Below are positions 1,379 through 57,600 of a stretch of 64,000 bases of DNA, piece after piece. The DNA is from Macrostomum lignano (taxonomy: Eukaryota). Position 1 is the first letter of the stretch, and each line of letters starts with the position of its first letter. Under the pieces are notes generated by a model. The model had not been told where the DNA came from and ran no database searches. It worked only from the letters and a program-made list of their open reading frames with translations. A program made the translations under genes and the position numbers. The stretch covers positions 1 to 64,000 of the forward strand of contig NIVC01000841.1 in assembly GCA_002269645.1 (NCBI GenBank), given 5' to 3'.

Positions 1379-1739
1379 TTAAGTTGACCAGGTGCAGAAC
1401 TTACTCAGACACGGGGTGACGCTCGCTTGGAGCGACGCTCCACAATCGGACCTGGCGCGTGTTGGTGCCATTGGAAAACCAGCTGGATTCTCGGCGGCGT
1501 TCCAGGGACGATTTTAGATGGATCGAAGTGCTCCTCGAACTGCCTCTGCTGCTGCTGCTCACGCTGGAGCATCTTCTCCTCGATGAGCAGTCGACGCATC
1601 AGCTGAACGAGCTCTGCTTGGTCGTCGGTCTCGAAAATGTGTCGTTCGATGGCGACTTGAAAGGCCGAGCGTTCACGGCTTGATAACAGATGGACGACAG
1701 GAGAACGAGCAGGACAATGGGACCAGCTGCTGCTCTCAT
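1379..1739 (-). pseudogene. Copy 1 of secreted prepropeptide (urotensin II/somatostatin-like), four 1-bp indels; corrected C-terminus PCLSKFCTWST*
   Basis: High nucleotide identity to copies at 3547-3903 and 6262-6618. Indels near 1425 (-1), 1458 (+1), 1512 (-1) and 1644 (-1). Could be long-read error rather than true decay. Confidence 0.75.
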
Positions 1740-1913
1740 GGTGACCAGAGTCTGAAACAGGTGAAACGTACCTGTAAAATGTCACGGCAAACCCATACGG
1801 CTACTGGCAGTTGCAGTAATAACGGTTCGTAACTTACCGATTGGGTTTCTTTAAGAAGTGCGTGTTAATCAGAAAATTGTGTAGGCGAATTTGTTAAGCG
1901 CCTAAAACAACTG

Positions 1914-1965
1914 TATTTATAGACAATAAGCTTAGCCAATGGCGCCAGAGCGCGTTGGTGGGCCG
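1914..1965 (-). promoter_or_regulatory. Conserved promoter of peptide copy 1 (TATA box plus upstream CCAAT-containing block); equivalents at 4083-4130 and 6780-6835
   Basis: TATAAATA and the block AGCCAAT(G/A)GCGCCAGAGCGCGTTGGTGG are kept in all three copies while the flanks diverge. Confidence 0.7.
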
Positions 1966-3546
1966 GCGCAAGTAGGCGTTGTCCTGATAAATTATTTTTT
2001 AGCCACAGACTTTCCACTTTTTTATTAACTGATGGACAGATAATTGAAAATTTTCAACAGCTTTTACACTGATTATCGAGCCATTTCATTTTTTCGTTAT
2101 TTAATTTTTTATCAGCTTGAAAAAAACTAAGAGAAAGCATCAAATCGACGCATCTGTCGCTCTGAACTTTGTAAGTCAATTAAGTCAATTGATGGTCGTC
2201 ATTTTTTAATTTACCAATATAGTAAAATTGGGAAAATTTAAAATTAAATTGGTAAAATAGTAAAATTTAAAAAAATGTTTTTTTCCAATTACATAATGCG
2301 CAATGGAATTATCGTCATTATTATTAGTTAGTTACCAATTTTTATCGCTTCTATGTGGTTTTTCAAGTCCATACCAAGACGACAACCGACTACTCGTAGA
2401 GGGCCAATCAGATACTGTCGTACACAATTTAAGCGACTGCTGCGTCGGGTTCCACAAGTGCATCCTGTGACGGAATATGTCGCTGGATTCACACCGTCTT
2501 GATAGAATCGCAAGCGCGCTCGATGGGATTATTCCTTGTAAATCTCTGGAATCTGGACGTTTTGAAGGCCCAATTTTAGATTCGAACGAAGGCAATTCAA
2601 TTCTCGGCTCGGCCATGACACACGAGGGAAATTTAATAAGCTATCAAGATTGATATCAGGATGGGAGTACATGCTTGCTGCTTTAAACACCTTTATTCCG
2701 CAGAAGCCAGACTTGGCTTTTTACATGTTCATGGGGACTAACGTATAATCCATTATGCTAAAAATTGTTTGTCGGTAGGTAGGTATCTATCTATCTATGT
2801 TTGTGATCGATTAGAGAAAAATATAATGCTAAAGTTGGACTGTTAAATAGTATCCATGCCAGGTGTCACCGACGCGATGGGATACTTAAAGGCTGAGCGC
2901 CGTGATAACTGCTGAATTGGAAAAAAGCGGCGACCCTGGGGCGCGCCTGAGAGCAGAAACATCCCACCGGTGAATTTGTGTTTTCTTGTCTTTGGATGGT
3001 TCAAGGCCGCAATTACTCATACTCATGCATACATGTGCATCATCACCAGAGTGGTTAAAATTATAGTTCATCGATTGTCAGCAAAGCGCTGCATATTCAG
3101 GGTGCCAGCACATGTACATCTACTATGGCTCGATACGTACAGTCTAAACGCATTGAAATGCAAAATTCTGAGCTACATCTAGTCTATACGATAGAGAATT
3201 AAGTCAAAAAATGAAAAAATATCAAACCACTGTTTGCGATCTCGCTACGAGCGAATTAAGCAAGACAATATGCTACCAAGAGTTTTTCTGTCCCAAGATG
3301 TAATAAAGGATTTATTTGAAGCCATTACCGATAAGATCGATAAAACTTGGCCACAAAAGGCCAAAATAGGGGATTTCTGGAAAGAAAATTTGCACGATTT
3401 TTTTATTGAGCGGGGACATTCGACTCTATAACTTTATGATCAATTAGTTAAAATTAAAAGACAGGTGGGTTCAGCACTAGCTAAGATAAGTTTGTTAGAC
3501 TTCACTTCGAGTGCCCGATCTTTCTGAGCTTTCGGAGGCTCCAAGC

Positions 3547-3903
3547 TTAATAGGTGCAAAACTTCAGCAGACACGGGGTGACGCTCGGCTTGGAGCGACG
3601 CTCCACAATCGGGCCTGGCGGTGTTGGTGCCATTGGAAAATCAGCTGGATTCTCGGCGGCGTTCCAGGGACGATTTTTAGATGGATCGAAGTGCTCCTCG
3701 AACTGCCTCTGCTGCTGCTGCTCACGCTGGAGCATCTTCTCCTCGATGAGCAGTCGACGCATCAGCTGAACGAGCTCTGCTTGGTCGTCGGTCTCGAAAA
3801 TGTATCGGTTCGATGGCGACTTGAAAGGTCGAGCGTTCACGGCTTGATAACAGATGGCCGACAGGAGAACGAGCAGGACAATGGGACCAGCTGCTGCTCT
3901 CAT
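3547..3903 (-). CDS. Copy 2 of secreted prepropeptide, 118 aa: signal peptide, acidic/Gln-rich pro-region, RR site, mature SKPSVTPCLLKFCTY
   Basis: Hydrophobic N-terminus MRAAAGPIVLLVLLSAICYQAVNA, then dibasic ERR and a C-terminal six-residue disulfide ring. 5'UTR intron 3916-4003 (GTAAGT...TTTCAG) and TATAAATA at 4083-4090. Confidence 0.85.
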   Translation of the reverse strand: MRAAAGPIVLLVLLSAICYQAVNARPFKSPSNRYIFETDDQAELVQLMRRLLIEEKMLQREQQQQRQFEEHFDPSKNRPWNAAENPADFPMAPTPPGPIVERRSKPSVTPCLLKFCTY

Positions 3904-4989
3904 GGTGACCAGAGTCTGAAACAGGTGAAACGTACCGATTCAGAACGACATGAGAAACACATACGGCTACTGGCAGTTGCAGCAGTAACTGTTCGTAACT
4001 TACCGATTGGGTTTTTCAAGAAGGGTGCTAGTCTGGAAATTGGAAATTGTGCTAGCAATTTTGCAAGCTCGTAAAACAGTTGTATTTATAGACAATTAGC
4101 TTAGCCAATAGCGCCAGAGCGCGTTGGTGGACTGGCAGGTGGGCGTTTTCCAGAAAAATTATCTTTGTTTGAGATCTAGTCGAATGGTAGCTAATTGATT
4201 TATAAGTGCTTGTTAATTGGATTTTTTTAGCGACATGATTTTTCTCATTGCCTACATTTTTATTAGCTTGGAAATGGAAAAATTAAGAGAAAGCATGATA
4301 TCGATGCATTTAATTGTAGTTGGTACTACATAAGTCGACGATGCAGTAATTCGATGCTTTTCTGTCTGTCTAGTCCGGTTCATATGAGCTTCAGATGCCT
4401 CACTGAAGTTTCTGTAGGTCCATTTATCTGAATCGCACTGGCCCGAAGAAGGAGAACTGTTGTATTTAAGAATCTGCGCGCCATTCAGCAGAGGCCATTG
4501 AGAGGTCGAGTGTACGTCTGCGCGGGCTTGTCCACAATGTGTGGTCTCTTGACAGTTTTTCTAGGTTGCAGGTACGTGTCGTCTATATCTGTACATGTAA
4601 ACGCGCACCGCGAGCATTTGCAGAGTGGGTAAAATATTTATTTGATCAATCATGAGCGATGTGCTGAACGGTAGATCATCCTGTTGGCGGGCGGTTTTTC
4701 AAGGCGTGGTTTTAGAGTCAGTCTTGTGGTGTCCCTGGCTGTGGACTGACTTGCTGTGGAGGGATATTTTCTGGAAGTTCAGAGACTCATCGAAGAGGCA
4801 ATTCCGGCTAATTTACGGTTGCTCAATTTGGAGCTTGGTGCTTAGCACGACGTGGCACCCCTAAAACCGACATCAGTGTTCTGTACTGTTCTGAGCACCT
4901 CCTGGTTGTCTCGAAAGTCTTGATGACCGATTGGCTAGGACTCAGTGGTAGACATTGGATACGATACGCGGGCCACAAAAAGTACACAA

Positions 4990-5260
4990 AAATTAAAAAT
5001 GTCTGTTTCTCAAAGTCGATGCAAATTTAGGGAGATGACTGGTGCGCTTCTTATCAAGGAAAACCATGCTTCGCGTCTATTTTTAGCCTGCACGTTCGCC
5101 TTCAATTGGCCGACGAGCGGATAGTCATTCGCAGGCTTAAATGCCATATATCCGCAATCACACAGAATACAGGCGACTCGGCGGGCTGCATGCAATGAAA
5201 AAATTGGAAAGAGGGCTTCGGGCCACACAGAAATGGCCTGTGGACCTCAGGTTGGGGACC
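4990..5260 (-). pseudogene. Possible decayed NADAR-domain fragment
   Basis: Two frames give HFCVARSPLSNFF...LYSV and GYMAFKPANDY...QAK, resembling NADAR SPLSNFY...Y.S.E.YxxAxK. Broken and weak. Confidence 0.3.
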
Positions 5261-5679
5261 CCTGCAGGGCTAGGTCCTAGAAGAATTGGCATCGGCAACT
5301 CATGCGACAGTAGGAGGCGACGTTTCCTGGACGCTTGGGGAAGTCGAGTCTGCGATCGATGACTGGGCGATAGTAAAACAAGTATCAAGTTATGCTTCCC
5401 TTAATTAATGAAGCCTCATCCGCAAACTGGAGTGGTACTGACACCTTAACTTCTGACATTGTTAGGGGTTAAAATCAAAGCTAAAGTAAAGCTGAAGGTG
5501 ATCATTCCGTAAACTGCACTCATTGCGTCTGGTTTTGTCTGTAGTTTTAGATTGCCGGTTGTTTGCTCAGCAACATGCTTTTAAGTCAGACTATTTGAAA
5601 TAACGATTAGCGAGAAAGGCCTCTCTTTGTCTAGGCGGTAACTCGAGGTTCGTAATTTTCTAAACAGAAAGCTTTCTGA

Positions 5680-5890
5680 ATGTCAATAGAGCAATAAGAA
5701 AGGCAGGACATATCGAAAGAGGAACACTGGATCTCTCCTCTATTAAAAACAATAACAATTTTTGTGCTGAAAAATGAGAACTTCCTATCTTTGTAATGTA
5801 TTTTTTACATGTCTCCTAAAACCTGTCTCCTAAAATTTTCCAAGAAGCGTATAGTTCCCGTCCTTCTACTTGAGTAGCCTTCGGTACATG
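5680..5890. mobile_element. One arm of a dispersed foldback/MITE family (also 11190-11650 and 21550-21790)
   Basis: Shared sequence TCAATAGAGCAATAAGAAAGGC...CTCCT(C)TAT..AAAGCAATAACAATTT.TGTGCTGAAAAA...CTTCCTATCT. Confidence 0.6.
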
Positions 5891-6261
5891 AGCCAGCTAG
5901 CTATACATGCAGGGCTATTTGCAGTGAACCATGCAGTTTGTACAGTGAAGAACTGAGTAAAAAATAATTTAAATCAAACAACTTTTTGCATCTCGCATGC
6001 AGTCTCTAGAATTCAGCGAGAAAATGCATATGAGCTTCAAAGTCTCTGAAGCTGTATTAAATTTATTATTTTAAATCGTCAAACGTAAAACCGATGAAGT
6101 GTTGCCGCGAAAGACATTAAAATATAGGATTTTCGAACAAAAGCTGGCGGAATTTTTTATTTATTGCCCTCATTTGTTTGGGACATTCAGCTAATCGCAT
6201 AATTTTAGGATCGATTGATTCAAAGAGAAAAGATCGACGTGAGCTCTCCGCCGATCCAAGT

Positions 6262-6618
6262 TTACCAGGTGCAAAACTTCAGCAGACACGGGGTGACGCT
6301 CGGCTTGGAGCGACGCTCCACAATCGGGCCTGGCGGTGTTGGTGCCATTGGAAAACCAGCTGGATTCTCGGCGGCGTTCCAGGGACGATTTTTAGATGGA
6401 TCGAAGTGCTCCTCGAACTGCCTCTGCTGCTGCTGCTCACGCTGGAGCATCTTCTCCTCGATGAGCAGTCGACGCATCAGCTGAACGAGCTCTGCTTGGT
6501 CGTCGGTCTCGAAAATGTGTCGGTTCGATGGCGACTTGAAAGGCCGAGCGTTCACGGCTTGATAACAGATGGCCGACAGGAGAACGAGCAGGACAATGGG
6601 ACCAGCTGCTGCTCTCAT
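6262..6618 (-). CDS. Copy 3 of secreted prepropeptide, 118 aa, mature SKPSVTPCLLKFCTW
   Basis: Intact ORF from the ATG at 6618. The upstream in-frame extension in the ORF track lies in the 5'UTR intron 6631-6704. TATAAATA at 6780-6787. Confidence 0.85.
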   Translation of the reverse strand: MRAAAGPIVLLVLLSAICYQAVNARPFKSPSNRHIFETDDQAELVQLMRRLLIEEKMLQREQQQQRQFEEHFDPSKNRPWNAAENPAGFPMAPTPPGPIVERRSKPSVTPCLLKFCTW

Positions 6619-7529
6619 GGTGACCAGAGTCTGAAACAGGTGAAACGTACCTGTAAAATGTAACGGCAAACCCATACGGCTCCTAATAACGGTTCGTAAC
6701 TTACCGGTTGGGTTTTTTCAAAAAGCGATGTTTATTTGGATATTGTGTAAGCGAATACTGTCAAGCTTTTAAAAGTGTGTATTTATAGACAATTCGAGTA
6801 AGCTTAGCCAATAGCGCCAGAGCGCGTTGGTGGGTCGGCAGGTGGGCGTTTTTCCGATAAATTTGATTATTCTTTTATTTTGCATGTAGACTCACCTCCA
6901 CTTGCTTTGAAAAAGTGCTTTCAGATATTTGTGATTTTCAAGTGTTTTTCAACGGATTTAATCGCGACTTCTATAGAATTTTTCGTTTCCAAAATTGATT
7001 TTCATCTTTTAAAATTAAGAGAAATTGGATCGAAGCGCAGTGAAATCACAGATGTTCTATGTTACATTTATGATGCAACTGAAGCAGAAGGTTGCGCTAC
7101 AACTCGAGTTTTCTTAGAAAAGACCCGGACGCCGTTGATGAACGCGTATTTTCCGTATCGTCATTGCATTTATGTGGGATTCTGAGAAACTCAGACAAAC
7201 TGAGTGAAAAAAAATCCACGTTAGAAAAATTAGATTTTTCGAGAGCACACTGCAGCAATGAATACGCAGTAATTCCGAGTATTTTTATTCCATAGTTGTT
7301 CATGCACCGACGATAATGATTAAGTCATGCGAGAGTGTCTATTGAAATTAAAATTTTATTTATAGAATGTTGATTCATTTTTTGTCTAGAGCATACTGAC
7401 AGAAAGGACGCTTTGTCTGCGTGGATGCCGCTTTTAGGCAATGTGTCTGTCTTCTACAGAAACCATTTGCAATGAAATGTCTATAGATGTCTATATGTCT
7501 ATATGCCTGTATAAATGCATCTATAGTTT

Positions 7530-7992: not shown

Positions 7993-8226
7993 TGGTCTCT
8001 TGGTTGGCGCCCCTGTCTCTTGGTAGGCGCCCCTGTCTCTTGGTAGGCGCCCCTCTCTCTTGGTAGGCGCCCCTGTCTCTTGGTTGGCGCCCCTGTCTCT
8101 TGGTAGGCGCCCCTGTCTCTTGGTAGGCGCCCCTGTCTCTTGGTAGGCGCCCCTGTCTCTTGGTAGGCGCCCCTGTCTCTTGGTAGGCGCCCCTGTCTCT
8201 TGGTAGGCGCCCCCTGTCTCTTGGTG
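7993..8226. repeat. 20-bp GGCGCC-core minisatellite
   Basis: Unit GGCGCCCCTGTCTCTTGGTA; same family as 46645-47640. Confidence 0.95.
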
Positions 8227-9179: not shown

Positions 9180-10490
9180 CTAGACCTAATGAAATAGCAG
9201 GTCTATAGATCATATAAACTATCAAGTCTATAGATCGTATAGACTACCAAGTCTATAGATCGTATGGACTATCAAAGTCTATAGATCATATAAACTGGAC
9301 TATCAGGTATACTTATCTTATGAACTATCAAGTCTATAGATCATATGGACCATCAAGTCAATATATCATATGGATAATCAATTCTATAGATCATATGGAA
9401 TATTACGTCTATAGATCTTATGGACCAGCAAGTCTATAGATCCTATGGATTATCAGGCCTATGGATCTTGTGAACTACTAAGTTTAGAATCATTTGGTCT
9501 ATCAAGTCTATAGATCATGTGCAATTCTATAGATCATGCGGACTATCAAGTCTATAGATCATGTGGACTATCAATTCGATAGATCATGTGGACTGTCAAT
9601 TCGATAGATCATGTGGACTGTCAATTCGATAGATCATGTGGACTATCAATTCGATAGATCATGTGGACTGTCAATTCGATAGATCATGTGGACTGTCAAT
9701 TCGATAGATCATGTGGACTATCAATTCTATAGATCATGTGGACTATCAATTCTATAGATCATGTGGACTATCAATTAGATAGATCATGTGGACTGTCAAT
9801 TCGATAGATCATGTGGACTATCAATTCTATAGATCATGTGGACTATCAATTCTATAGATCATGTGGACTGTCAATTCGATAGATCATGTGGACTGTCAAT
9901 TCGATAGATCATGTGGACTATCAATTCGATAGATCATGTGGACTGTCAATTCGATAGATCATGTGGACTATCAATTCGATAGATCATGTGGACTGTCAAT
10001 TCGATAAATCATGTGGACTATTAATTCGATAGATCATGTGGACTATCAATTCTATAGATCATGTGGACTATCAATTCTATAGATCATGTGGACTGTCAAT
10101 TCGATAGATCATGTGGACTGTCAATTCGATAGATCATGTGGACTGTCAATTCGATAGATCATGTGGACTGTCAATTCGATAGATCATGTGGACTATTAAT
10201 TCGATAGATCATGTGGACTATCAATTCTATAGATCATGTGGACTATCAATTCTATAGATCATGTGGACTGTCAATTCGATAGATCATGTGGACTATCAAG
10301 TCCATAGATCATGTGGACTATCAATTCTATAGATCATGTGGACTATCAAGTCTGTAGATCATGTGGATAATCAATCTATAGATCATGTGGACTGTCAATT
10401 CGATAGATCATGTGGACTGTCAATTTTATAGATCATGTGGACTGTCAATTCTATAGATCTTATGGACTATCGATTCTACCGATTTTAAAT
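9180..10490. repeat. 25-bp minisatellite with degenerate left flank
   Basis: Unit ATAGATCATGTGGACT(A/G)TCAATTC(G/T). Confidence 0.95.
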
Positions 10491-11189: not shown

Positions 11190-11650
11190 AGTACCAAAGG
11201 ACTACCTAAAGAAAAAATACACTGCGGAGATGGCAAGTTTTCATTTTTTCAACACAAAGATTGTTATTGCTTTTGATAGAGGGGAGACCCAGTGTTCATC
11301 TTTTGATATGTTGTGCATTTTTTAGCTCTATTGATTTTTATAATCTTTTCGTTTAGAATATTAGAATACCATGTCAATTTTTTATTCTACGAACATTTCA
11401 TTTACCTAAAATCGTTAAAAAACAACCTTAGAATCATAATTTTCTAAACGAAAAGATTTATAAATATCAATAGAGCAATAAGAAAGGCGCAACATGTAAT
11501 TCAAAGGTGAACATACGTAGAATCTTTTCGTTCAGATTCTATGTTTGCCTCCTATCAAAAGCAATAGCAATTTTTGTGTTGAAAAATCTCCGTAGTGTAT
11601 TTTTCGGCGAAAACCAGCCTCATTAACATCTACTTTAGTAGTCCTTGCCT
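11190..11650. mobile_element. Foldback/MITE-like element with long imperfect inverted arms
   Basis: Left arm (AAGGACTAC...AATACACTGCGGAGAT...TCAACACAAAGATTGTTATTGCTTTTGATAG...GCTCTATTGA) is the imperfect reverse complement of the right arm (TCAATAGAGC...CTATCAAAAGCAATAGCAATTTTTGTGTTGA...ATCTCCGTAGTGTATT...GTAGTCCTT). Confidence 0.7.
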
Positions 11651-13055: not shown

Positions 13056-37695
<24,640 letters not shown>

Positions 37696-41169: not shown

Positions 41170-41535
41170 TGGTGGAACTAGGGATTAGGGATTAGGAATA
41201 GAGATTAAGGCAAGGACGACTTACATGTACGAGTAAGTAACGTATATAGTGTCTACTTAAGTAGTCCTTGGATTAGGGATTAAAGATTAGAGTAGGGATT
41301 AGGAATAATGGATTAGGAATTAGGGATTAGGGATTAGAGTAGGGATTAGGAATAATGGATTAGGAATTACGGATTAGGGATTACAGTAGGGATTAGGAAT
41401 AATGGATTATGGATTAGGGATAGGGATTAGGAATTAGGTATTCGAGATAGGGATTAATGATTAGGGATTAGAGTAGATTTGGGGATTAGGGATTAAGGAT
41501 AGGGATTAGGGATTAGAGTTGGGATTAGGGTTACA
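41170..41535 (+). repeat. Degenerate telomere-like (GGGATTA/TTAGGG)n tract
   Basis: Repeats of GATTAGGG and GATTAGGA. Confidence 0.8.
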
Positions 41536-42719: not shown

Positions 42720-43069
42720 ACGTTCTGAGCGCGTGCAGCAGGATGATCAAACTATAACAAATATTATTGATTTACAATTTCTGTTCGTGAACTAGAGCTG
42801 TATGAGCTACCCAAACATTGACAAAACATTCCAACTTGGAAACTAAATTATGCCGAATAAAGATGCGCTGGACGAATCCTGTCAGCAGGATTGAATGCTA
42901 AGATGCTTTTTACAGCTGCCCACTGTTGCAACAGAACTGCAACCTAAGCCTACGAATGCTGCGTTTGATTCGGGATGCTGATAATGACTACAGAATTATA
43001 AAAGATTTTGGGTAGCTTGCAAAGGAGCTATCAGGATCCGCTCTCCGAAGTTGGTGCCTCCTTTGTAGC

Positions 43070-43545
43070 TAGCGCCCCCTCTGTAGCTGGCGCCCTCTGT
43101 AGCTAGCGCCCCTCCCTCTGTAGCTGTATGGCGCCCCCTTAGTACTCGTAGCTGGCGCCCTCTGTAGCTAGCGCCCCTCTCTCTGTAGCTGGCGCCCTCT
43201 GTAGCTAGCGCCCCTCCCTCTGTAGCTGTATGGCGCCCCCTTAGTACTCGTAGCTGGCGCCCTCTGTAGCTAGCGCCCCTCCCTCTGTAGCTGGCGCCGC
43301 CTCTAGCTAGCGCCCCCTTAGTACTCGTAGCTGGCGCCCTCTGTAGCTAGCGCCCCTCCCTCTGTAGCTGGCGCCCCCTTTGTACTCGTGGCTGGCGCCC
43401 TCTGTAGCTGGCACCCTCTGTAGCTGGCGCCCTCTGTAGCTGGCGCCCTCTGTAGCTGGCGCCCTCTGTAGCTAGCGCCCCCTGTAGCTAGCGCCCCCTC
43501 CCTCTGTAGCTAGCGCCCCCTGTAGCTGTTTGGCCCTTTCTGTAG
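43070..43545. repeat. GGCGCC-core minisatellite CTCTGTAGCT(G/A)GCGCC
   Basis: Variable 16-20-bp units. Confidence 0.9.
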
Positions 43546-45119: not shown

Positions 45120-48100
45120 TTAGAAGGCGGTCAGTTGCTGCTGCTGCTGCTGCTGGGGCGCCCTGGCCCGGCAGATGTACAGCTGCAACAGACGCCGCTT
45201 GGTGCCGCTCATATCGCCCAGATGCAGCATCAGGGAGTCGCCAACCTTGAGCTGCACCTGTACTAAGCAGAATATCGCCGCCTTTCGTATCGGCGACTCC
45301 TGATGCTCGCAGGCCCTGACCAGGCCGGGGCAGAGCTCTGCTAGCAGGCGTTCGAGCAGACCAGAGTCAGCCTCTTGAACTACTCGCATCTCCATCTTGA
45401 TTGCCGCCAAAGTGATTGGCACCTCAGAGTCCAGCACAATGGGAATGAGGACTCGGAGAATCTGATCAGCTGGCAGGCAGGCAGACAGAGCTTTGGCGCA
45501 ATCGTCCGCGGCTTTGGCTACAGACCGGTCCTGATCTCTGTGCGCTTCCAGCACCTTCAATACGGTGACCTCGACAAAGTCAACGAATCTGGCCGACTCG
45601 GCTCGGAGTAGCTCTTGCAGGGCGGACAGAGCGCAGGCTCGAATGTCACTCTGAAGGATTTGTGGGATGAAAACAGCACATTGCCGGATCAAAAGGTGGC
45701 AGTAACAAGGGTGTCAGATGAGGCGTCGATAAAAAGGGTGTCAGACAAGAGGTGTCAGATGAGACGTCAGTAAGCAGGGTGTCAGACAAGAGATGTCAGA
45801 TGAGGCGTCAGTAAACAGGGTGTCAGACAAGAGACGTCAGTAAACAGGATGTCAGACAAGAGATGTCAGTAAACAGGATGTCAGACAAGAGATGTCAGTA
45901 AAAAGGATGTCAGACAAGAGATGTCAGTAAACAGGATGTCAGACAAGAGATGTCAGTAAACAGGGTGTCAGACAAGAGATGTCAGTAAACAGGATGTCAC
46001 ACAAGAGATGTCAGTAAACAGGATGTCACACAAGAGATGTCAGTAAACAGGATGTCAGGACCAGTGTCACAATGAGTCTCACGGACTAAACAGAGACACA
46101 CAAGAGGAGGAATAAGAACACAATGATTGCCCTCAGTTCTGGGCGTGTCTTCAGTTAAATTTATTTTTACCAGGAGACACGGCTGAAAAATACGTAGCTT
46201 AACTGGCAAAAACGCCCACAAAACAAGCTGGGAACCCCCCAGCCGCCGCTCACCTCATTTTCGGACAGAGTTTCCAACAAAATTAGCAGGATATTCTTGA
46301 AGTGATCGTCCCAGTTCAACGCGGTCTTGTCACGAACCAGTCCAATTAGTCGTTGCATGCAAAACTTTCTTTGCTCGTGTCTGAGAAGGTTGGGTAGAAG
46401 CTGACAGTTAGACAGGAAAAGGTGTTGACAGCAATTTAGAATTGGCCTGCAACTTTCTTTGATGGAAGAAAACTCAAAATTTAATGACCCGAGGAAGACC
46501 AAAGCTAGCAAGCAGGTCAAGTCAATTAAAATAATCTCCAATTGAAGAGATTTTGTCAATTTAATCATTAATTAATGGGAAACTCAAAGCCCTTGGCGAA
46601 CTTGAAAAAAAACGTTGTTAGTCTGAGTCAGTTTTACAGAGACAGTCCCTGTCTCTTGGTGGGCGCCCCTGTCTCTTGGTAGAAGCCACTATCTCTTGGT
46701 AGAAGCCACTATCTCTTGGTGGGCGCCCCTGTCTCTTGGTAGAAGCCACTATCTCTTGGTGGGCGCCCCTGTCTCTTGGTAGAAGCCACTATCTCTTGGT
46801 GGGCGCCCCTGTCTCTTGGTAGAAGCCACTGTCTCTTGGTGAGCGCCCCTGTCTCTTGGTGGGCGCCCCTGTCTCTTGGTAGAAGCCACTGTCTCTTGGT
46901 GGGCGCCCCTGTCTCTTGGTAGAAGCCACTATCTCTTGGTGGGCGCCCCTGTCTCTTGGTAGAAGCCACTATCTCTTGGTGGGCGCCCCTGTCTCTTGGT
47001 AGAAGCCACTATCTCTTGGTGGGCGCCCCTGTCTCTTGGTAGAAGCCACTGTCTCTTGGTGAGCGCCCCTGTCTCTTGGTGGGCGCCCCTGTCTCTTGGT
47101 GGGCGCCCCTGTCTCTTGGTGGGCGCCCCTGTCTCTTGGTAGACGCCACTGTCTCTTGGTAGAAGCCACTGTCTCTTGGTAGACGCCACTGTCTCTTGGT
47201 AGAAGCCACTGTCTGTTGATAGAAGCCACTATCTCTTGGTAGAAGCCACTATCTCTTGGTAGAAGCCACTGTCTGTTGATAGACGCCACTGTCCCTTGGT
47301 AGAAGCCACTATCTCTTGGTAGAAGCCACTGTCTGTTGGTAGACGCCACTATCTCTCGGTAGAAGCTACTGTTTCTTGCTAGAAGCCACTGTCTCTTGGT
47401 AGACGCCACTGTCTCTTGGTAGACGCCACTGTCTCTTGGTAGACGCCACTGTCTCTTGATAGACGCCACTGTCTCTTGGTAGAAGCCACTGTCTGTTGAT
47501 AGAAGCCACTATCTCTTGGTAGAAGCCACTGTCCCTTGGTAGAAGCCACTATCTCTTGGTAGAAGCCACTGTCTGTTGGTAGAAGCCACTATCTCTCGGT
47601 AGAAGCCACTGTTTCTTGTTAGAAGCCATTGTCTCTTGGTAGAGCGATTTTGTTAGACTTTAGACTTTTGTTAGACTTTTGTTAGAGCGATTGGTAATCG
47701 CTGGGGGGGGGGTTTCAGGCCTCTCTCTGACCCCCAGCCCGCGTACACGCCAGTAATCTGAGTATTGGGTCAAGAAGCATTAGCAATAAACTATTGTATT
47801 TACTGCAGAACCAGACAAAAACAACAGAAGAGACAATCACCATTAAAAACAATTGAAAAACAATTTCTACTGTAAGATAAAAAAACACATGCTTAAAATA
47901 TAAGCAATTTTACAGACAGGCAACCCATGCAAAACATATTGATCGATTTTGTTTAGACTGAGTAATTACTATACTACTACTGTGTGCATAGAGTAGTATA
48001 TACGCAATGAAAATATAAAATTCGGTGCATTCCACTGCCAGCTGTTCTAAGGGACACAATAACCGCACTACAACAAGCCACCCGACTCTTAGGACCTCTT

Positions 48101-48365
48101 CGGCGTTAAACTGCGACTTCGCCGAGAGCAAGAGGGCGCCAGACTTTTGACTTCCTCAGCTGCAGCCCCCGCTGAGTCTGAGAATTTTGTCACCGGGCGA
48201 GAACTTCGGCTGCGACTGATTGCGCCTGCTGCCGGGCCGCGAGCTGGGACTTCCTGCCTTCTTTGGGAGCTGCAGATCAGTTGCGCACAGATGGATAGAT
48301 AGATAGATAGATAGATAGATGGATAGATAGATAGATGGATAGATAGATAGATAGATAGATAGATG

Positions 48366-48429
<64 letters not shown>

Positions 48430-48506
48430 CATAGATAGATAGATACATAGATAGATAGATGGATAGATAGATAGATAAATAGATGGATAGATAGATTAAA
48501 TAGATG

Positions 48507-48557
<51 letters not shown>

Positions 48558-48558
48558 G

Positions 48559-48617
<59 letters not shown>

Positions 48618-51600
48618 GGATAGATAGAGAGATAGATAGATAGATAGATGATAGATGATAGATAGATAGATAGATAGATGGATAGATAGTTAGATAGATG
48701 GATAGATAGATAGATGGATAGATAGATAGACAGATAGATAGATAGATAGATAGTTAGATAGATGATAGATGATAGATAGATAGATAGATAGATAGATGGA
48801 TAGATAGTTAGATAGATGGATAGATAGATAGATGGATAGATAGATAGATAGATAGATAGATAGACAGATAGATAGACAGATAGATAGAGATAGATAGATA
48901 GCTAGCTAGCTAGCAACACGGTGATATGCACTACAGATGTGGTGAAAAAAATACAATAAAACAGCAGTCGCATTCAAGCCATACATTAAGAAAACTCATT
49001 CTGGAAAAAATATTCCGAAATTCCCTCAGACCACAGCAGCTCACCGCTGATTCCTGGCGCCGGACAGCTCTCGAACAATATCTGCTAGAAGCAGATCGCC
49101 AGACTGCAGACTTTGCTGTTGCGGCTGCGGCTGCATCATCAGCTGCTGGTAGTCGTCTGCTGAAAATGGATCCGCCTGATAGCTCGGCAGCTGGTAGGCA
49201 GGCTGCTGCTGTTGATAATTTCTATTCGCAAGCCTTTGATTAGTTTGACCGTTCCTGCTACTAGTAGCGGCGGCAGCAGCAGCAGAAGCCACAGAGCGCG
49301 GCTCAGCCCAAGTGGCCCGACCAGCAGATGAAGTCCCAGTGAGACTCTGAATATCCTGAGCAGCCTGCCGGATGCAGGAGCTCATCTCTTCCGGGCTGAA
49401 ACTGGTGCCCTGCTGACTAGAGGACTGCTGACCGGCATTTCTGCGAATAAGAAATTATTTCAACTTGCAACTTGCAACAAATATCAACTTATTGAAAAAA
49501 AGAAAACAAAATCATTATTAATTTCCTAAATAACAAATTTCAAGGGAAAAAATTAACCGAAAAGGTAACGACACAGTAAATTTAAACTGTAAAGAAACAC
49601 AATTCTAAGAAAAACACAGTTTCTGGTGCAAATTTAAGAATCGCGTGCAATGAAAACTAACAATTTAAAAGCCTTTGTGAATGAGGAATAAACAACACCA
49701 ATTCTAAGGCAGAGATGACACACACAGATCTGAGGCAGAGATGACACACACACAGATCTGAGGCAGAGATGACACACACAGATCTGAGGCAGAGATGACA
49801 CACACAGATCTGAGGCAGAGATGACACACACAGATCTGAGGCAGACATGACACACACAGATCTGAGGCAGAGATGACACACACACAGATCTGAGGCAGAG
49901 ATGACACACACACAGATCTGAGGCAGAGATGACACACACAGATCTGAGGCAGAGATGACACACACACAGATCTGAGGCAGAGATGACACACACAGATCTG
50001 AGGCAGAGATGACACACACACAGATCTGAGGCAGAGATGACACACACAGATCTGAGGCAGAGATGACACACACAGATCTGAGGCAGAGATGACACACACA
50101 CAGATCTGAGGCAGAGATGACACACACACAGATCTGAGGCAGAGATGACACACACAGATCTGAGGCAGAGATGACACACACACAGATCTGAGGCAGAGAT
50201 GACACACACAGATCTGAGGCAGAGATGACACACACAGATCTGAGGCAGAGATGACACACACAGATCTGAGGCAGAGATGACACACACAGATCTGAGGCAG
50301 ACATGACACACACAGATCTGAGGCAGAGATGACACACACACAGATCTGAGGCAGAGATGACACACACAGATCTGAGGCAGAGATGACACACAGATCTGAG
50401 GCAGAGATGACACACACAGATCTGAGGCAGAGATGACACACAGATCTGAGGCAGAGATGACACACACAGATCTGAGGCAGAGATGACACACACAGATCTG
50501 AGGCAGAGATGACACACACAGATCTGAGGCAGAGATGACACACACAGATCTGAGGCAGAGATGACACACACAGATCTGAGGCAGAGATGACATGCCAAAA
50601 CCAAGAGTAAATTATTAATTATATTCATAAGCCGAAAGCTAAAAAAGCAAGTTGTGTGCAAGTGAGAATGCATGCAGAGGGCTGTATATGGATCTGCACA
50701 ATTGAAGCTCCAGATCGATAGCTAGCTGCATTAACCGGAATTTTATCGCTAGCCCCTACCTATTTGTACCATCCAAACCAGCACAACGAGCCGCAGACAC
50801 CGAGGGTCGCCTCATTGAAGCAAATAAAAATGACCTTCTGTCGTATAAAAGTGTCCAAGCGGATTTGATAAAAATTAATTAGTTGTTCAAATAAAACAGT
50901 GCATATGCTAGTTTACTAAGTAGCATATGCCTATGGAGCGATTTTATTAGCTAAGGTTGAAATCAATTCACTGGGGTATCTTATTGGTTATAATGTGTAA
51001 TGAGCATGCTTGCACCCAACACAAATGTGCTAACTAATAGAACAATGCATATAAGTAGTGTGAAACGAAAATAAAATTTAGAATACTCAAGTTTTAAATC
51101 AAATATAAAAATAACTAATTTCTTGCAAATCTTCAGCTACTCGTACTTATAACAGACTTAACTACTAAATAAGTGAAAATGCAATTTATTGAAACAAAAT
51201 TGTTGTGTTTCAATGTAAAACAAAGCAGAGTTCAAGTATGAAATTAAATATAAACTATATTTAATATTTATACTATATTTTACATTTTATATAAAATATA
51301 AAATGTCCATTAAAATGGGAGAATTCCTCACCTAAAATATCCCTTAAAATGGGAGAATTCCTCACCTAAAATATCCCTTAAAATGGGAGAATTCCTCACC
51401 TAAAATATCCCTTAAAATGGGAGAATTCCTCACCTAAAATGTCCCATAAAATGGGAGAATTCCTCACCTAAAATGTCCCTTAAAATGGGAGAATTCCTCA
51501 CCTAAAATGTCCCATAAAATGGGAGAATTCCTCACCTAAAATATCCCTTAAAATGGGAGAATTCCTCACCTAAAATGTCCCTTAAAATGGGAAAATTCCT

Positions 51601-54600
51601 CACCTAAAATGTCCTTTAAAATCGGAGAATTCCTTGCTCAAAATATCATTTGAAAATGGGAGACTTCCTCGCTCAAAATATTCAGCAAAATACTCACCGT
51701 CCAGTCCCAGAAGCGGTGGCGGCAGTTCCTAGACTGCCTCGACGCTGTTGCTGTTGCAAGCCGGCAGCGGTAGCCGACGCCTCCTGCTGATTGGCCACCA
51801 CCTCAGCCACTCTTTGCTGCATCGGGCCAGCTAGCGATTGCAGTATGTTAGCAAACGAATCGTTGTTTAATCTGGCCAAACCAGCTAGCAGCATCTGAGA
51901 GTAACGGCGCAGATCAGCAGACCTTGGCTCTCGTGTTAAAGCTGCTAGCCTCGCTACAACCGCTTTGGTGTCCGCGTTCGACTGCAGGGCGTGCGACGGC
52001 AAGTCTGGCAGTGACATCAGCAGGTGCTGCAGCACTGCTAATTGCACCTGGTGGGTGAAGTTTTTTGAATCAAACAAAAATTATATTGATTTTATACTAC
52101 CGATATTAATCTCATTAATACTTCATCTTAAAAATTGGTGACGGGTGGCCTTTTAAACTAGAGGACCATCTAGAGTGATGGGCGGCCTTTCAAAATAGAG
52201 GACCATCTAGAGTGATGGGCGGCCTTTTAAAATAGAGGACCATCTAGAGTGATGGGCGGCCTTTCAAAATAGAGGACCATCTAGAGTGATGGGCGGCCTT
52301 TCAAAATAGAGGACCATCTAGAGTGATGGGCGGCCTTTCAAAATAGAGGACCATCTAGAGTGATGGGTGGCCTTTCAAAATAGAGGACCATCTAAAGTGA
52401 TGGGCGGCCTTTCAAAATAGAGGACCATTTAGAGTGATGGGTGGCCTTTCAAAATAGAGGACCATCTAAAGTGATGGGCGTCCTTTCAAAATAGAGGACC
52501 ATCTAGAGTGATGGGCGTCCTTTCAAAATAGAGGACCATCTAGAGTGATGGGTGGCCTTTCAAAATAGAGGACCATCTAGAGTGATGGGCGGCCTTTTAA
52601 AATAGAGGACCATCTAGAGTGATGGGCGGCCTTTCAAAATAGAGGACCATCTAGAGTGATGGGCGTCCTTTCAAAATAGAGGACCATCTAGAGTGATGGG
52701 CGTCCTTTCAAAATAGAGGACCATCTAGAGTGATGGGTGGCCTTTCAAAATAGAGGACCATCTAAAGTGATGGGCGGCCTTTCAAAATAGAGGACCATTT
52801 AGAGTGATGGGTGGCCTTTCAAAATAGAGGACCATCTAAAGTGATGGGCGTCCTTTCAAAATAGAGGACCATCTAGAGTGATGGGCGTCCTTTCAAAATA
52901 GAGGACCATCTAGAGTGATGGGCGGCCTTTCAAAATAGAGGACCATCTAGAGTGATGGGTGGCCTTCCAAAATAGAGGACCATCTAGAGTGATGGGCGGC
53001 CTTAGCAGCTATTAATAAAAGGACCATCGAAGATGACGCATTGATCATCAATAAATGTGGATTATAAAAGCAAACAGATAAATTATAAAATAATAATCTA
53101 TTAAATACCTTAGGCAAAGTCTGCAGCCATTGATCGCACACAGACCTAAGCAGTTGTTGGAACTGCAATTCCGGTGGAAATGCCATTCGGACACGTTCCA
53201 GAGCGGCTTGTACTCGGCTTTGCTGACTAGTTAGCGTCTCGGTTGCTAAGCGACCAACCAGCCGCATCTGCAGCGTGTACAACCAGTCGTGCAGTTCGGC
53301 ATGAAATTTAGTAACAAATTCGCCAAGAGCTTCGAGAAAGAATTGCGTCACCCGGCCGTTGGTTTCGCCGAATAGGCGAGTAAAGATGTCGCAAATTTTT
53401 CGAACTTCGGCCGAGTTTAAACGACACGAATCGCGGCTGAGGTAGCTGGTCAGGCTGGCTAGGCCATCGCGGCGTTGGCTCCAGTCTCGAGACTCCAACT
53501 GCTTGATGATGTCCGCGATGTTCTGCGGCGATGGAGATGGTGGCGGAATGGAAAATTAGGGGGCGGATGACTGACGGATGAAGGGGCGGACGAGTGACGG
53601 ATGAAGGGGCGGACGATTGACGGATGAAGGGGCGGACGATTGACGGATGAAGGGGCGGACGAGTGACGGATGAAGGGGCGGATGACTGACGGATGAAGGG
53701 GCGGATGACTGACGGATGAAGGGGCGGATGACTGACGGATGAAGGGGCGGATGACTGACGGATGAAGGGGCGGACGAGTGACGGATGAAGGGGCGGATGA
53801 CGGACGGATGAAGGGGCGGATGATTGACGGATGACTGACGGATGAAGGGGCGGATGACTGACGGATGAAGGGGCGGATGATTGACGGATGAAGGGGCGGA
53901 TGACTGACGGATGAAGGGGCGGATGACTGACGGATGAAGGGGCGGATGACTGACGGATGAAGGGGCGGATGACTGACGGATGAAGGGGCGGATGACTGAC
54001 GGATGAAGGGGCGGATGACTGACGGATGAAGGGGCGGATGACTGACGGATGAAGGGGCGGATGACTGACGGATGAAGGGGCGGACGAGTGACGGATGAAG
54101 GGGCGGATGACGGACGGATGAAGGGGCGGATGACTGACGGATGAAGGGGCGGATGACTGACGGATGAAGGGGCGGATGACTGACGGATGAAGGGGCGGAC
54201 GAGTGACGGATGAAGGGGCGGACGAGTGACGGATGAAGGGGCGGATGACTGACGGATGAAGGGGCGGATGACTGACGGATGAAGGGGCGGATGATTGACG
54301 GATGAAGGGGCGGATGACTGGAGGATAAAGGGGCGGATGGCTGGAGGATGAAGGGGCGGATGACTGACGGATGAAGGGGGCGGATGACTGGAGGATAAAG
54401 GGGCGGATGACTGGAGGATGAAGGGGCAGATGACTGGAGGATGAAGGGGCGGATGACTGGAGGATAAAGGGGCGGATGATTGGAGGATAACTAGGTAGCT
54501 TTTGGTGCAGGTAATACAATAGTTATTCTAGTGAATGACGACACAAATTTGGTACAACATGCATGAATACCAGATTGCCTTACAAAGATATTCGAAAACA

Positions 54601-57600
54601 ACTAATAAGCACGATACACTACTCATACAGAATCTACACTATTTTCCAAACCGAAGTAACTAATATAGTTTGGAACACTTGTTTTTTATTACAGAAGATA
54701 CCTGCACTGAGGTGATGTTCGTTGAATGATTGTTGCATTGTGTTTGACCATTGCTGACAGCGTCAGACTTTCCAGCATCTGACTCTGTCGCCTTAATTAT
54801 AGAGTAAAGTTTTCAATTATATAATTAATTTATATTACCTGATGATCAACTTTTCATGCTCAGGGCCGTGTAAGAAAAATCAAGAGGGATTGCTCTCAGA
54901 TTCTCATAGAGAGATCGGGGGAATTGCTCTCAGATTCTCATAGAGAGATCGGGGGGAATTGCTCTCAGATTCTCATAGGGAGATCAAGGGGAATTGCTCT
55001 CAGATTCTCATAGGGAGATCGGGGGAATTGCTCTCAGATTCTCATAGGGAGATCGGGGGAATTGCTCTCAGATTCTCATAGGGAGATCGGGGGAATTGCT
55101 CTCAGATTCTCATAGGGAGATCGGGGGGAATTGCTCTCAGATTCTCATAGGGAGATCGGGGGGCATTGCTCTCAGATTCTCATAGGGAGATCAAGAGGAA
55201 CTGCTATCAGATTCTCATAGGGAGATCAAGGGGAATTTTATAACTTGTTTATCATGCTTAGAATCACGTAAATATTAAATAGAAAATCAAATACTTACGA
55301 AAAAACGGATTAACATACTCGGGATTTCAAATAACATCAAAGGCATGCGATAAGCAGAATCGGTCGTGCAGAAATTACTATATACAAAAATTATCATTTG
55401 GTTGAGGAAATTTTCGAGCTAATTAAAAATTGTAATATAAACATTGATCGCTTCATTCGAAAGTTAATGCAATTACATAGCAGCATTCCGCCACCTCGTG
55501 TGTGTGTGTGAGTATGTGCGCACGATTTTATTATAATACCTTGCTAATACGGGCAACGAATCTCCGTCCAGTATAGCAGCTCTGCGATTTCAAAATAATA
55601 TGTAATATGCTTGCAGATTTTATTGGTTTATCAATATTGAACCCTGACTCTTTCATTCTTCCCAATTCCCTAATCCCCATCATAGATTCTTCCCGATTTC
55701 CTCATCCCCATCAAAGATTCTCCCAATTCTTTAATCTAACATCATAGATTCTTCCCAATTCCCTAATCCCCATCATAGATTCTTCCCGATTCCCTAATCC
55801 CCATCATAGATTCTTCCCAATTCCCTAATCCCCATCAAAGATTCTCCAAATTCCATAATCCCCATCATAGGTTCTTCCCAATTCCCTAATCCCCGTCATA
55901 GATTCTCCCAATTCCCTAATCCCCATCATAGATTCTTTCCAATTCCCTAATCCCCATCATAGATTCTTCCCAATTCCTTAATCCCCATCATAGATTCTTC
56001 CCAATTCCCTAATTCCCATCATAGATTCTTCCCAATTCCCTAATCCCCATCATAGATTCTTCCCAATTCCCTAATTCCCATCATAGATTCTCCCAATTCC
56101 CTAATCCCCATCATAGATTCTTTCCAATTCCCTAATCCCCATCATAGATTCTTCCCAATTCCCTAATCTCCATCATAGATTCTTCCCAATTCCCTAATTC
56201 CCATCATAGATTCTTCCCAATTCCCTAATCCCCATCATAGATTCTTCCCAATTCCCTAATTCCCATCATAGATTCTTCCCAATTCTCTAATCCCCGTCAT
56301 AGATTCTTCCTAATTCCCTAATCCCCATCATAGATTCTTCCCGATTGTCTAATCTCATATCATAGAGAATTTTTAATTCCCGTAATCCCACATCATAGAA
56401 ACTTCCCGATTCCCTAATCCCACATAATAGAAACTTCCCAAATCCCAAATCTCACATTATTGAAACTTCCCAATTCCCTAATCCCACATTCAAAAACTTC
56501 CCAATTCCTTAATCCCACATCATAAATTCTTTTCAGTCCTCTAATCCCAAATCATAGATTCTTCCCGACTCCCCAATCCCCACATAATAAAATCTTCCCA
56601 ATTCCCTAAACCCACATGAAAGAAATCCCAATTTCTTAACCCCACACCCGGAACTCACATTAAAGGACTTATAAGAGCTATCCGAACAAACAGACGAAGT
56701 CTCGCTGGCCTCCTCGCCACCGCCATTAGCCGAAGCTCTGGCCAGTTTGTACTGCAACGCTTCAGCTAGAGCGCTCTGTGCGGCGGCGTCATTCTCGCTG
56801 CCAGAAGCTCGCCGGCTGGCAGAGGACGCGCCAGTTCTGTAGGTGCCACCGCCGCTATTCACCAGAGCGGCTGTTCGAGCACCTTGCGACTGGCGTCTCA
56901 AGCTGCTCATACCGCCAGAGCCAGACGAAGGGACGGGGATGCCGCTGCCGCCGCGGCCCGGGGAAGCTTCCCTACTAGCGCCCTGGGATCTGGGACCCTT
57001 GGGTCGGCTGGGAGTCACACGCTGCTGCTGATATTGGTAAGGCAGCTGTTGCTGTTGTTTCTGCTGCTGCTGCTGCTGCATCTGCTGCTGCTGCTGCTGA
57101 TAAGTCAAATAACTGTAACGAGAGGAAGGCGAAGCTTCGCGACTAGCGGGAGTCGATTGACTGACGGTTGATCCTCCAGTCTTTGTTGCCGTTCGGCCTC
57201 GCTGCTGCTGTTGCTGCTGCTGACCGAGTCGGAGTGTCCGAGCAGACGGAGCTAGAACTCGACCAGCGCCTGCGGTTGCCGCGGTCATCAAGCTGTTGTG
57301 ATCGCTGGTTGATCTGGGCAGGCCAGTTGTGCCAGTAGTGGCTGAGAGAGGCTTGCCTGCAGCTTTAGGCAGGGCCGAGGTGGCTGCCGAACCTGTACAG
57401 TTTGGTTAGCTGGCTGTAATAGGCTGTATAGTAATTGATTTTACTGTCATGCTGTAAACAGAGCCTGTACCTATAGCTACCATGCTGTAAAGAGAGCTTG
57501 TAACTAGCTGTCATGATGTAAAGAGAGTCTGTATCTAGCTGTCATGCTGTAAACAGAGCCTGTACCTATAGCTACCATGCTGTAAAGAGAGCTTGTAACT

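Follow-up and report, generated by a model that had tools for sequence, protein, structure and literature searches.

What kind of product is encoded by an array of small, near-identical coding regions in the flatworm Macrostomum lignano? The window analysed here (the whole 64-kb stretch of DNA) contains three direct-repeat gene units, all on the minus strand, with start-to-start distances of 2163 and 2715 nt, and tblastn and blastn found no further copies within it. These units are a small, previously undescribed M. lignano gene in three tandem copies, and the reading that we prefer, to which we would give an even chance, is that of tandem two-exon genes (two intact, one frame-broken as assembled) for the precursor of a cyclic signalling peptide in the manner of urotensin II (UII) and the SSRP-like peptides. 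The DNA surrounding the array is very rich in repeats. The features of the array are as follows.

1379..1961, minus strand: unit A
1379..1739, minus strand: coding region of copy A, broken as assembled, with four one-base indels (net -2) when aligned with copies B and C
1752..1837, minus strand: putative 5'UTR intron of copy A, 86 nt, with splice consensus common to the paralogs
1914..1961, minus strand: core promoter of copy A, with TATAAATA at 1914-1921 and the 33-nt box with inverted CCAAT at 1929-1961
3402..3407, minus strand: AATAAA polyadenylation-signal motif of copy B, 140 nt past the stop
3547..4130, minus strand: unit B
3547..3903, minus strand: intact coding sequence of copy B, 118 codons plus stop (signal peptide 3832-3903; Arg-Arg 3595-3600; stop 3547-3549)
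3550-3594, minus strand: predicted mature 15-mer of copy B, SKPSVTPCLLKFCTY
3916..4003, minus strand: putative 5'UTR intron of copy B, 88 nt
4004..4082, minus strand: TATA-to-splice-donor interval of copy B, without ATG and 55-61% identical between copies, containing non-coding exon 1 and the presumed transcription start
4083..4130, minus strand: core promoter of copy B, with TATAAATA at 4083-4090 and the conserved box with inverted CCAAT at 4098-4130
6160..6165, minus strand: AATAAA motif of copy C, 97 nt past the stop
6262..6833, minus strand: unit C
6262..6618, minus strand: intact coding sequence of copy C, 118 codons plus stop (signal peptide 6547-6618; Arg-Arg 6310-6315)
6265-6309, minus strand: predicted mature 15-mer of copy C, SKPSVTPCLLKFCTW
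6631..6704, minus strand: putative 5'UTR intron of copy C, 74 nt
6780..6833, minus strand: core promoter of copy C, with TATAAATA at 6780-6787, a 6-nt insertion, and the inverted CCAAT box at 6801-6833

Structurally, all three units follow one plan, with a TATAAATA box, an inverted CCAAT box (within a 33-nt conserved box in every copy), a non-coding exon 1, a 74-88 nt GT..AG intron, and one coding exon. The 5'UTR introns are putative, deduced from consensus splice sites common to the three paralogs, with the interval GTAAGTTA...CCTGTTTCAG measuring 86, 88, and 74 nt in copies A, B, and C, respectively. The 75-79 nt stretch between TATA and splice donor is free of ATG in all three copies, and ATGs occur in the intron instead, where an in-frame upstream ATG of copy C also falls (at 6675). 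Preceding the start codon is a 12-nt leader, ACTCTGGTCACC, that is identical across copies and places an A at -3, and an AATAAA motif lies 97-204 nt past the stop across copies.

At the protein level, intact 118-codon ORFs are found in copies B and C only. Their precursors have a hydropathy peak at residues 8-18, a 24-residue signal peptide ending at a (-3,-1) site between VNA and RP, and Arg-Arg pairs at 49-50 and 102-103, and the 15 residues that follow the second pair run to the stop (SKPSVTP-C-LLKF-C-TY in copy B, ending -TW in copy C). Cys111 and Cys116, which have four residues between them and lie six residues and one residue from the C-terminus, are the sole cysteines of the secreted part in both intact copies. 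The mature peptide, as predicted, combines a hydrophobic ring with a positive charge of +2, or +4 if the Arg-Arg is counted. In the AlphaFold2 model, the signal helix (6-24) is followed by a single helix predicted with confidence (38-71), and the tail is disordered; modelled in this way, the precursor appears to lack any globular fold, which is what one expects of a prohormone. Two ORFs in the window, and none in 30 shuffles, have a dibasic site and a C-x4-C tail together with an N-terminus resembling a signal peptide, and the resemblance of the units to real, locally amplified prepropeptide genes is supported.

Conservation among the copies is limited to the functional parts, that is, promoter core, leader, and coding sequence, with saturated flanks: identity is 95.5-98.6% for the coding sequence and 87-96% for the core promoter, and outside these it falls to 55-61% (exon-1 UTR), 32-49% (3' flank), and 48-60% (upstream). 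The Met of copy A opens just a 46-aa ORF (1599-1739), and CLSKFCTWST, with which its last frame piece ends, has the Cys-x4-Cys spacing with Ser at the Trp place of the loop. Since an identical base adjoins three of its four indels, which is the pattern of long-read consensus errors, this copy may be intact in the living animal. Copies B and C differ by one synonymous and four non-synonymous changes (pS 0.012, pN 0.015), counts so few that they give no statistical power for a claim of diversification, and the only change in the mature peptide is terminal Tyr versus Trp. The earlier note had suggested diversification that included the mature peptide, a suggestion that this one residue cannot carry, and its "long acidic spacer" was overstated for a pro-region that has 11-12 acidic versus 10 basic residues, net -1 to -2. 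Its signal peptide, RR site, and C-terminal Cys-ring tail are present in both intact copies, and its common 5'UTR intron and TATA/CCAAT promoter are kept in all three. The three paralogs that it described are indeed three repeat units, but only B and C are intact; likewise, the tails CLLKFCTY and CLLKFCTW end intact ORFs, whereas the third belongs only to the frame piece of copy A.

Evolutionarily, the precursor stood alone in the databases searched. A phmmer search against 1.84 billion representative proteins gave no match at E<=0.001, word-seeded sequence searches found no homologue, Pfam and PDB searches returned only noise (nothing in Pfam better than E=0.04, and none of it somatostatin- or urotensin-related), and exact-product look-ups in sequence collections yielded no record of the product. 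Short precursors often slip through such similarity searches, and the precursor of Aplysia apUII itself gave no BLAST match (PMC3493602). Of the earlier proposal of a locally amplified SSRP family, the amplification and the overall design are supported; against it, the WK motif and the phase-0 intron are absent, and phmmer, Pfam, PDB, and word-seeded searches connected the precursor to no somatostatin or urotensin family, nor to any other. No GPCR genes were found in the 64-kb window, and the literature searched held no paper tying SSRP-like or UII-type peptides to flatworms.

Functionally, we posit that the genes are transcribed and that the 24-residue signal peptide would be removed co-translationally, after which the precursor would travel the regulated secretory pathway. 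A prohormone convertase would cut after Arg102-Arg103, and possibly also after Arg49-Arg50, and oxidation of Cys111-Cys116 would then yield a non-amidated 15-mer with the ring C-L-L-K-F-C and a one-aromatic tail. From a presumed site of expression, the mature peptide would most likely act as an extracellular signal on a presumed receptor, as do the molluscan and annelid urotensin-II/SSRP-like peptides, with Leu-Lys for Trp-Lys. M. lignano has a PC2 homologue that is expressed in neurons (PMC4490696). Speaking against a signalling peptide are the lack of any matching homologue, transcript, or peptide record in the collections searched, the absence of the WK Trp and the coding intron, both common family features (PMC9048919), the one copy that is broken as assembled, and a likeness that comprises about six residues and was noticed post hoc.

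The main rival to a signalling peptide is a lineage-specific gland secretion (seminal-fluid/prostate, antimicrobial, defensive, or adhesive-associated) whose Cys loop simply converges on a urotensin-like ring, and whose genes were multiplied to raise dosage and kept alike by gene conversion; we regard this as possible, though on balance unlikely. A precursor without homologues in the searches, a tandem array with near-identical coding sequences and unalignable flanks, TATA-driven promoters, a cationic peptide with a hydrophobic ring, and the missing family-defining Trp would all fit such a product, and tandem amplification, concerted evolution, strong TATA, and orphan status are equally typical of gland products. 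However, the full prohormone layout (two dibasic sites and one short peptide at the C-terminus), taken with the class-by-class loop match to SSRP-like peptides, goes beyond what an ordinary secreted protein would call for, and 15 residues with a Pro-rich N-terminal half are short for a membrane-active antimicrobial peptide. In M. lignano, 76 prostate-limited transcripts are known, many with a signal peptide and "No Blast Hit" (PMC5977470); our sequence is absent from the supplements of that screen, a weak counterpoint since they hold no protein sequences. If it were an orphan gland secretion, the array would add to the rapidly evolving families of secreted peptides in a worm used to study sexual conflict, and would be of local interest only. 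Far less probable is a non-functional repeated segment, with ORFs that are untranscribed or untranslated relics in an array decaying as in copy A. The four frame-breaking indels of that copy, a product unrecorded in any collection searched, and the very repeat-rich setting would suit a relic, but 118 open codons are kept in two copies, conservation is sharply confined to promoter core, leader, and coding sequence, exon 1 is ATG-free in all three copies next to an intron with ATGs, and three of the four indels look like consensus errors.

True orthology to a spiralian SSRP-like (apUII-type) gene, with coding introns lost, Trp changed to Leu, and a co-evolved SST/UT-like receptor, is in our view rather doubtful. 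The 112-aa Aplysia apUII precursor consists of a signal peptide and two peptides, each followed by a dibasic site, ahead of a C-terminal cyclic peptide with the ring C-L-W-K-V-C (PMC3493602), and the protostome SSRP-like peptides are described with four residues inside the loop, WK preceded by an aliphatic residue, extensions containing Pro, Ser, or Gly, and one Trp in the C-terminal part (PMC9048919); the Capitella peptide Ct-SSRPL1 activates a GPCR at 13 nM (PMC9048919). The M. lignano precursor shares with them the signal peptide, the length of ~110-120 aa (118 vs 112 aa), two dibasic sites, the three-part layout, and one predicted non-amidated cyclic peptide in single copy at the extreme C-terminus. 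Its loop, closed by a predicted disulfide, comprises exactly four residues, of which the first is aliphatic (Leu), the third is Lys, and the fourth is hydrophobic. Its N-terminal extension SKPSVTP is Ser/Pro-rich (two of each), and copy C, alone among the intact copies, has the Trp of the C-terminal tail. In contrast, the WK motif is absent, with Lys kept but Leu at loop position 2, where Trp defines the family, and the tail has two residues (Thr-Tyr in B, Thr-Trp in C) and no Pro, versus 5-8 residues in the family. The uninterrupted coding region has neither the phase-0 pro-region intron of all SSRP-like and ASTC genes examined nor the additional phase-1 intron within the mature peptide of molluscs and most annelids (PMC9048919). 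There is also no detectable precursor similarity, no clustering with SSRP-like/UII precursors, and no sequence-level tie to any UII or somatostatin precursor. Precedents exist, as intron-structure departures occur in an annelid with a miniaturised, compact genome and a nematode FK variant is known, its membership doubted (PMC9048919); the missing coding intron therefore weakens, but does not exclude, descent from SSRP-like genes. Such peptides were recently recorded from molluscs, annelids, brachiopods, rotifers, and xenacoelomorphs, with flatworms unmentioned (PMC9048919); the family is known in several other spiralian phyla, and Platyhelminthes lies outside those reported. Kinship of the signalling peptide that we prefer with this family is thus possible rather than demonstrated.

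That the array represents the flatworm branch still missing from the bilaterian urotensin-II/somatostatin-related system, with a Leu-Lys ligand that has shed the otherwise invariant Trp, seems to us unlikely. If this were true, the receptor pocket would have co-evolved, and the "essential" Trp would prove dispensable in a natural lineage; a flatworm member would also close a gap in somatostatin/urotensin history and offer structure-activity studies a natural ligand without Trp. Because M. lignano is a transgenic and transparent model, expression of the peptide should be readily mappable.

Among the other known systems, allatostatin-C (ASTC) likewise has a single Cys-loop peptide at the C-terminus of a small precursor, but the ASTC type was rejected, since the loop of protostome ASTC invariably contains six residues, with Asn commonly among them and an FxP motif in many cases, whereas the loop here has four (L-L-K-F) and neither Asn nor FxP. 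Nematode nlp-56, compared by description only, offers a precedent for an SSRP look-alike without the Trp of WK (FK there), and its authors hold its membership uncertain, as a solitary cluster (PMC9048919). Vertebrate urotensin II differs in gene structure and in the aromatic-Trp pair that stands before Lys where Leu-Leu is found here, and the M. lignano precursor gave no Pfam match to it; like the M. lignano peptide, it has a six-position ring with Lys and then an aromatic residue before the second Cys (PMC3493602), and both urotensin II and urotensin-related peptide are placed, as here, at the C-terminal end of their precursors.

The candidate peptide genes form a minus-strand array of three direct repeats (copies A, B and C), spaced 2163 and 2715 nt apart, and comparison of one unit against the whole 64-kb window (tblastn and blastn) recovered these three only; because the array reaches the window's lower edge, further copies may lie beyond position 1. 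The earlier note had read three paralogs here, and three repeat units indeed stand, but copy A is frame-broken and intact open reading frames (ORFs) are confined to B and C.

Coding regions of the three repeat units
1379-1739, minus strand: copy A coding region, broken frame, the start codon opening only a 46-residue ORF
3547-3903, minus strand: copy B CDS, uninterrupted frame of 118 codons
6262-6618, minus strand: copy C CDS, uninterrupted frame of 118 codons

In copy A, comparison with B and C shows four one-base indel events (net -2); as an identical base adjoins three of the four, they would be compatible with genuine decay or long-read consensus error alike. The frame pieces of copy A were compared as they stand, with the breaks left unbridged, and the third peptide previously proposed, CLSKFCTWST, is simply the end of the last such piece. 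Antisense to copies B and C lie ORFs of 187 aa (3511-4074, plus strand) and 161 aa (6178-6663, plus strand), respectively; these probably arise because the antisense frame is poor in stop codons, and no protein family in Pfam matched the strand opposite the three units. A possible relic of a mariner-type transposase at 1-470 found no support in Pfam, and Rfam gave zero matches in the window.

Structurally, all three units present the same succession of elements.

Gene anatomy, minus strand, 5' to 3'
33-nt conserved box with inverted CCAAT, common to A, B and C
TATAAATA, 3' of the 33-nt CCAAT box in A, B and C
ATG-free stretch of 75-79 nt after TATAAATA, all three units
Putative intron GTAAGTTA...CCTGTTTCAG of 86 (A), 88 (B) and 74 (C) nt, containing ATGs
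12-nt leader ACTCTGGTCACC, identical in A, B and C, with A at -3 relative to the ATG
Coding exon directly after the leader, all three units
AATAAA, 97-204 nt 3' of the stop codon, all three units

The TATA/CCAAT promoter and 5'UTR intron that had been ascribed to every copy are thus borne out as shared sequence, the intron being putative: we infer it from consensus splice sites common to the paralogs. Spliced-leader trans-splicing occurs in M. lignano (PMC8629364), so the acceptor of the putative intron could instead receive a spliced leader. The ORF of copy C lengthens to 137 aa when an upstream in-frame ATG is taken, an ATG that falls within this putative intron.

Identity between copies, by gene segment
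Further upstream: 48-60%
Core promoter: 87-96%, the low values due to a 6-nt insertion in copy C
First-exon UTR: 55-61%
Putative intron: 69-84%
12-nt leader: 100%
CDS: 95.5-98.6%
3' flank: 32-49%

Evolutionarily, just one synonymous and four non-synonymous substitutions separate copies B and C (pS 0.012, pN 0.015), numbers that permit no statement on the diversifying evolution suggested earlier. So little synonymous change next to flanks that are saturated indicates that the block from promoter to stop was gene-converted or else copied very recently, together with selection acting on the promoter core. Across 1379-6833, similarity ends sharply at the stop codon on one side and immediately 5' of the CCAAT box on the other, with essentially unalignable flanks, and the first-exon UTR is less conserved than the putative intron. 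These features suggest gene-conversion tracts delimited by the gene.

At the protein level, the intact copies B and C bear out the proposed layout of signal peptide, Arg-Arg site and C-terminal Cys ring, the disulfide being predicted. The signal peptide spans residues 1-24 (basic residue at 2, hydropathy peak at 8-18, cleavage site between VNA and RP), with a helix predicted by AlphaFold2 at 6-24. The single-sequence AlphaFold2 model (pTM 0.31) consists of one helix plus disorder, and as the pro-region has one confident helix (38-71, pLDDT about 90) with the remainder disordered, the precursor is predicted to have no globular domain. Describing the pro-region as an acidic spacer was an overstatement, its net charge being just -1 to -2. 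It starts with FKSP (residues 27-30; 3814-3825 in copy B), the tetrapeptide that also begins the long form of the Aplysia peptide apUII (PMC3493602), a coincidence most likely due to chance. Arg-Arg occurs at residues 49-50 and again at 102-103, the second pair followed by SKPSVTPCLLKFCTY in copy B and SKPSVTPCLLKFCTW in copy C; having no Gly extension, the mature peptide is predicted not to be amidated. The secreted product has just two cysteines, Cys111 and Cys116. ORFs in which a signal-like N-terminus occurs together with a dibasic site and a C-x4-C tail numbered two in the window and zero in 30 composition-preserving shuffles.

Beyond the array, the window holds conserved protein-coding exons, a retrotransposon and abundant tandem repeats.

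Other features of the window
23268-24005, plus strand: DEG/ENaC channel exon (amiloride-sensitive, Pfam ASC), roughly 16 kb from the peptide genes
27269-28000, minus strand: TRPM2-like domain exon, abutting a 96-copy GGGAGAGA microsatellite at 28004-28766
33126-36656, minus strand: LTR-retrotransposon gag-pol-type ORF, 1176 aa, uninterrupted, with reverse transcriptase, RNase H and integrase zinc-binding domain, in that order
45120-45692 and 52947-53498, minus strand: CLASP HEAT/TOG-like exons (CLASP stretch 45120-58871)
58224-58871, minus strand: CLASP_N exon (CLIP-associating protein), matching the UniRef M. lignano model A0A1I8F4C6
9202-10478, 13514-15108, 46649-47643, 49703-50592, 52138-53003, 53560-54479 and 55655-56613: examples of minisatellites (TRF)
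7995-8225, 26179-26485 and 43060-43527: GGCGCCCCT-type core common to several minisatellites
41270-41530: degenerate 7-nt array GGATTAG/GGGATTAG, 69% matches, resembling an interstitial telomere-like repeat

Some members of the DEG/ENaC family are peptide-gated. Over two blocks, one of 60 and one of 82 residues, the CLASP_N exon is 100% identical to A0A1I8F4C6, a match that assigns the window to M. lignano. The overall figure of 83% is due to some 35 garbled residues in that model, a sign that the older assembly behind it may contain a frame error. The CLASP introns are packed with minisatellites, whose density is exceptional over the whole window (TRF lists 43 rows scoring >=200, their periods being 20-46 nt and their copy numbers as high as 51). 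The GGGAGAGA microsatellite yields long artefactual ORFs on both strands, and a dispersed 62-nt repeat occurs at 5650-5711 and 11434-11495 (84% identical).

The search for somatostatin/urotensin-type relatives that the earlier note had proposed returned no relative of any kind: for the two intact proteins, Pfam (E<=10) yielded noise only, as did a PDB sequence search; word-seeded searching of 5.8 billion proteins was empty for the whole protein and for residues 70-118, and an exhaustive phmmer run over 1.84 billion representatives had 0 matches. Exact-product look-ups were likewise empty for copy B, copy C, its 137-aa upstream-ATG version and the 46-aa ORF of copy A; the searched collections evidently have little M. 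lignano beyond UniRef models, the exact look-up of the M. lignano CLASP model being empty too, so these nulls show the gene to be unannotated, not unexpressed. Short neuropeptide precursors commonly escape homology searches. The precursor of apUII, a member of the protostome somatostatin-related-peptide-like (SSRP-like) family, had no significant BLAST match when described (PMC3493602). Since the letters of the ring occur in no paper in a full-text literature search, no paper found links SSRP-like peptides with Platyhelminthes, and planarian prohormone catalogues contain no Cys-ring, somatostatin or urotensin entry, the locus represents an undescribed peptide-precursor family, which would at most be a Trp-less form of a known type.

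Functionally, we give about even credence to the reading that these genes encode a secreted precursor, which convertases would process into a small disulfide-cyclised peptide acting as an extracellular signal. Processing machinery for prohormones exists in M. lignano, given that its PC2 homologue is expressed in neurons (PMC4490696), and what speaks for the reading is the anatomy together with a six-residue resemblance. Tandem amplification with concerted evolution, TATA promoters and orphan status fit equally well with the main rival, a lineage-specific gland secretion, and M. lignano has many orphan secreted prostate transcripts (PMC5977470); we regard this rival as a tentative possibility. 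That the array is a dead repeat is unlikely in view of its two open frames and of conservation confined to functional parts. Descent from the SSRP-like family appears improbable, as the Trp-Lys (WK) motif of the Cys loop, a defining feature of that family, was looked for and is absent.

SSRP-like genes encode a signal peptide, canonical processing sites and one mature peptide at the C-terminus, in which two Cys enclose exactly four residues with the WK motif after I/V/L, the extensions are rich in Pro, Ser and Gly and a single Trp lies C-terminally; the pro-region has a phase-0 intron, joined in most molluscs and annelids by a phase-1 intron (Koch et al. 2022, PMC9048919). The family is reported in Mollusca, Annelida, Brachiopoda, Rotifera and Xenacoelomorpha and absent from Ecdysozoa, Nemertea and Phoronida, flatworms are unmentioned, and the nematode FK-variant nlp-56 is regarded as a doubtful member (PMC9048919). 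In Aplysia, the 112-aa apUII precursor runs from signal peptide through peptide, dibasic site, peptide and dibasic site to the cyclic peptide, with a C-L-W-K-V-C ring and Pro and Trp in the tail (PMC3493602), and the Capitella peptide (ring C-I-W-K-V-C, tail PPTPW) activates an SST-like GPCR at 13 nM (PMC9048919).

Unlike these peptides, the Macrostomum product has Leu in the Trp place of the loop, a tail of just two residues, a coding region without introns and no similarity at the precursor level; its four-residue loop also differs from the six-residue loop of allatostatin-C. Because the defining WK feature is lacking, the step from a gene that works like an SSRP-like gene to one that is an SSRP-like gene is unjustified, and of the SSRP-like identity proposed earlier the precursor layout and loop features stand, membership being improbable. 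Besides a partial likeness in the Ser/Pro N-terminal extension and, in copy C, a terminal Trp, the shared features comprise precursor size, three-part layout and single C-terminal copy, as well as loop size, an aliphatic residue in first place of the loop, Lys at position 3 and a hydrophobic position 4.
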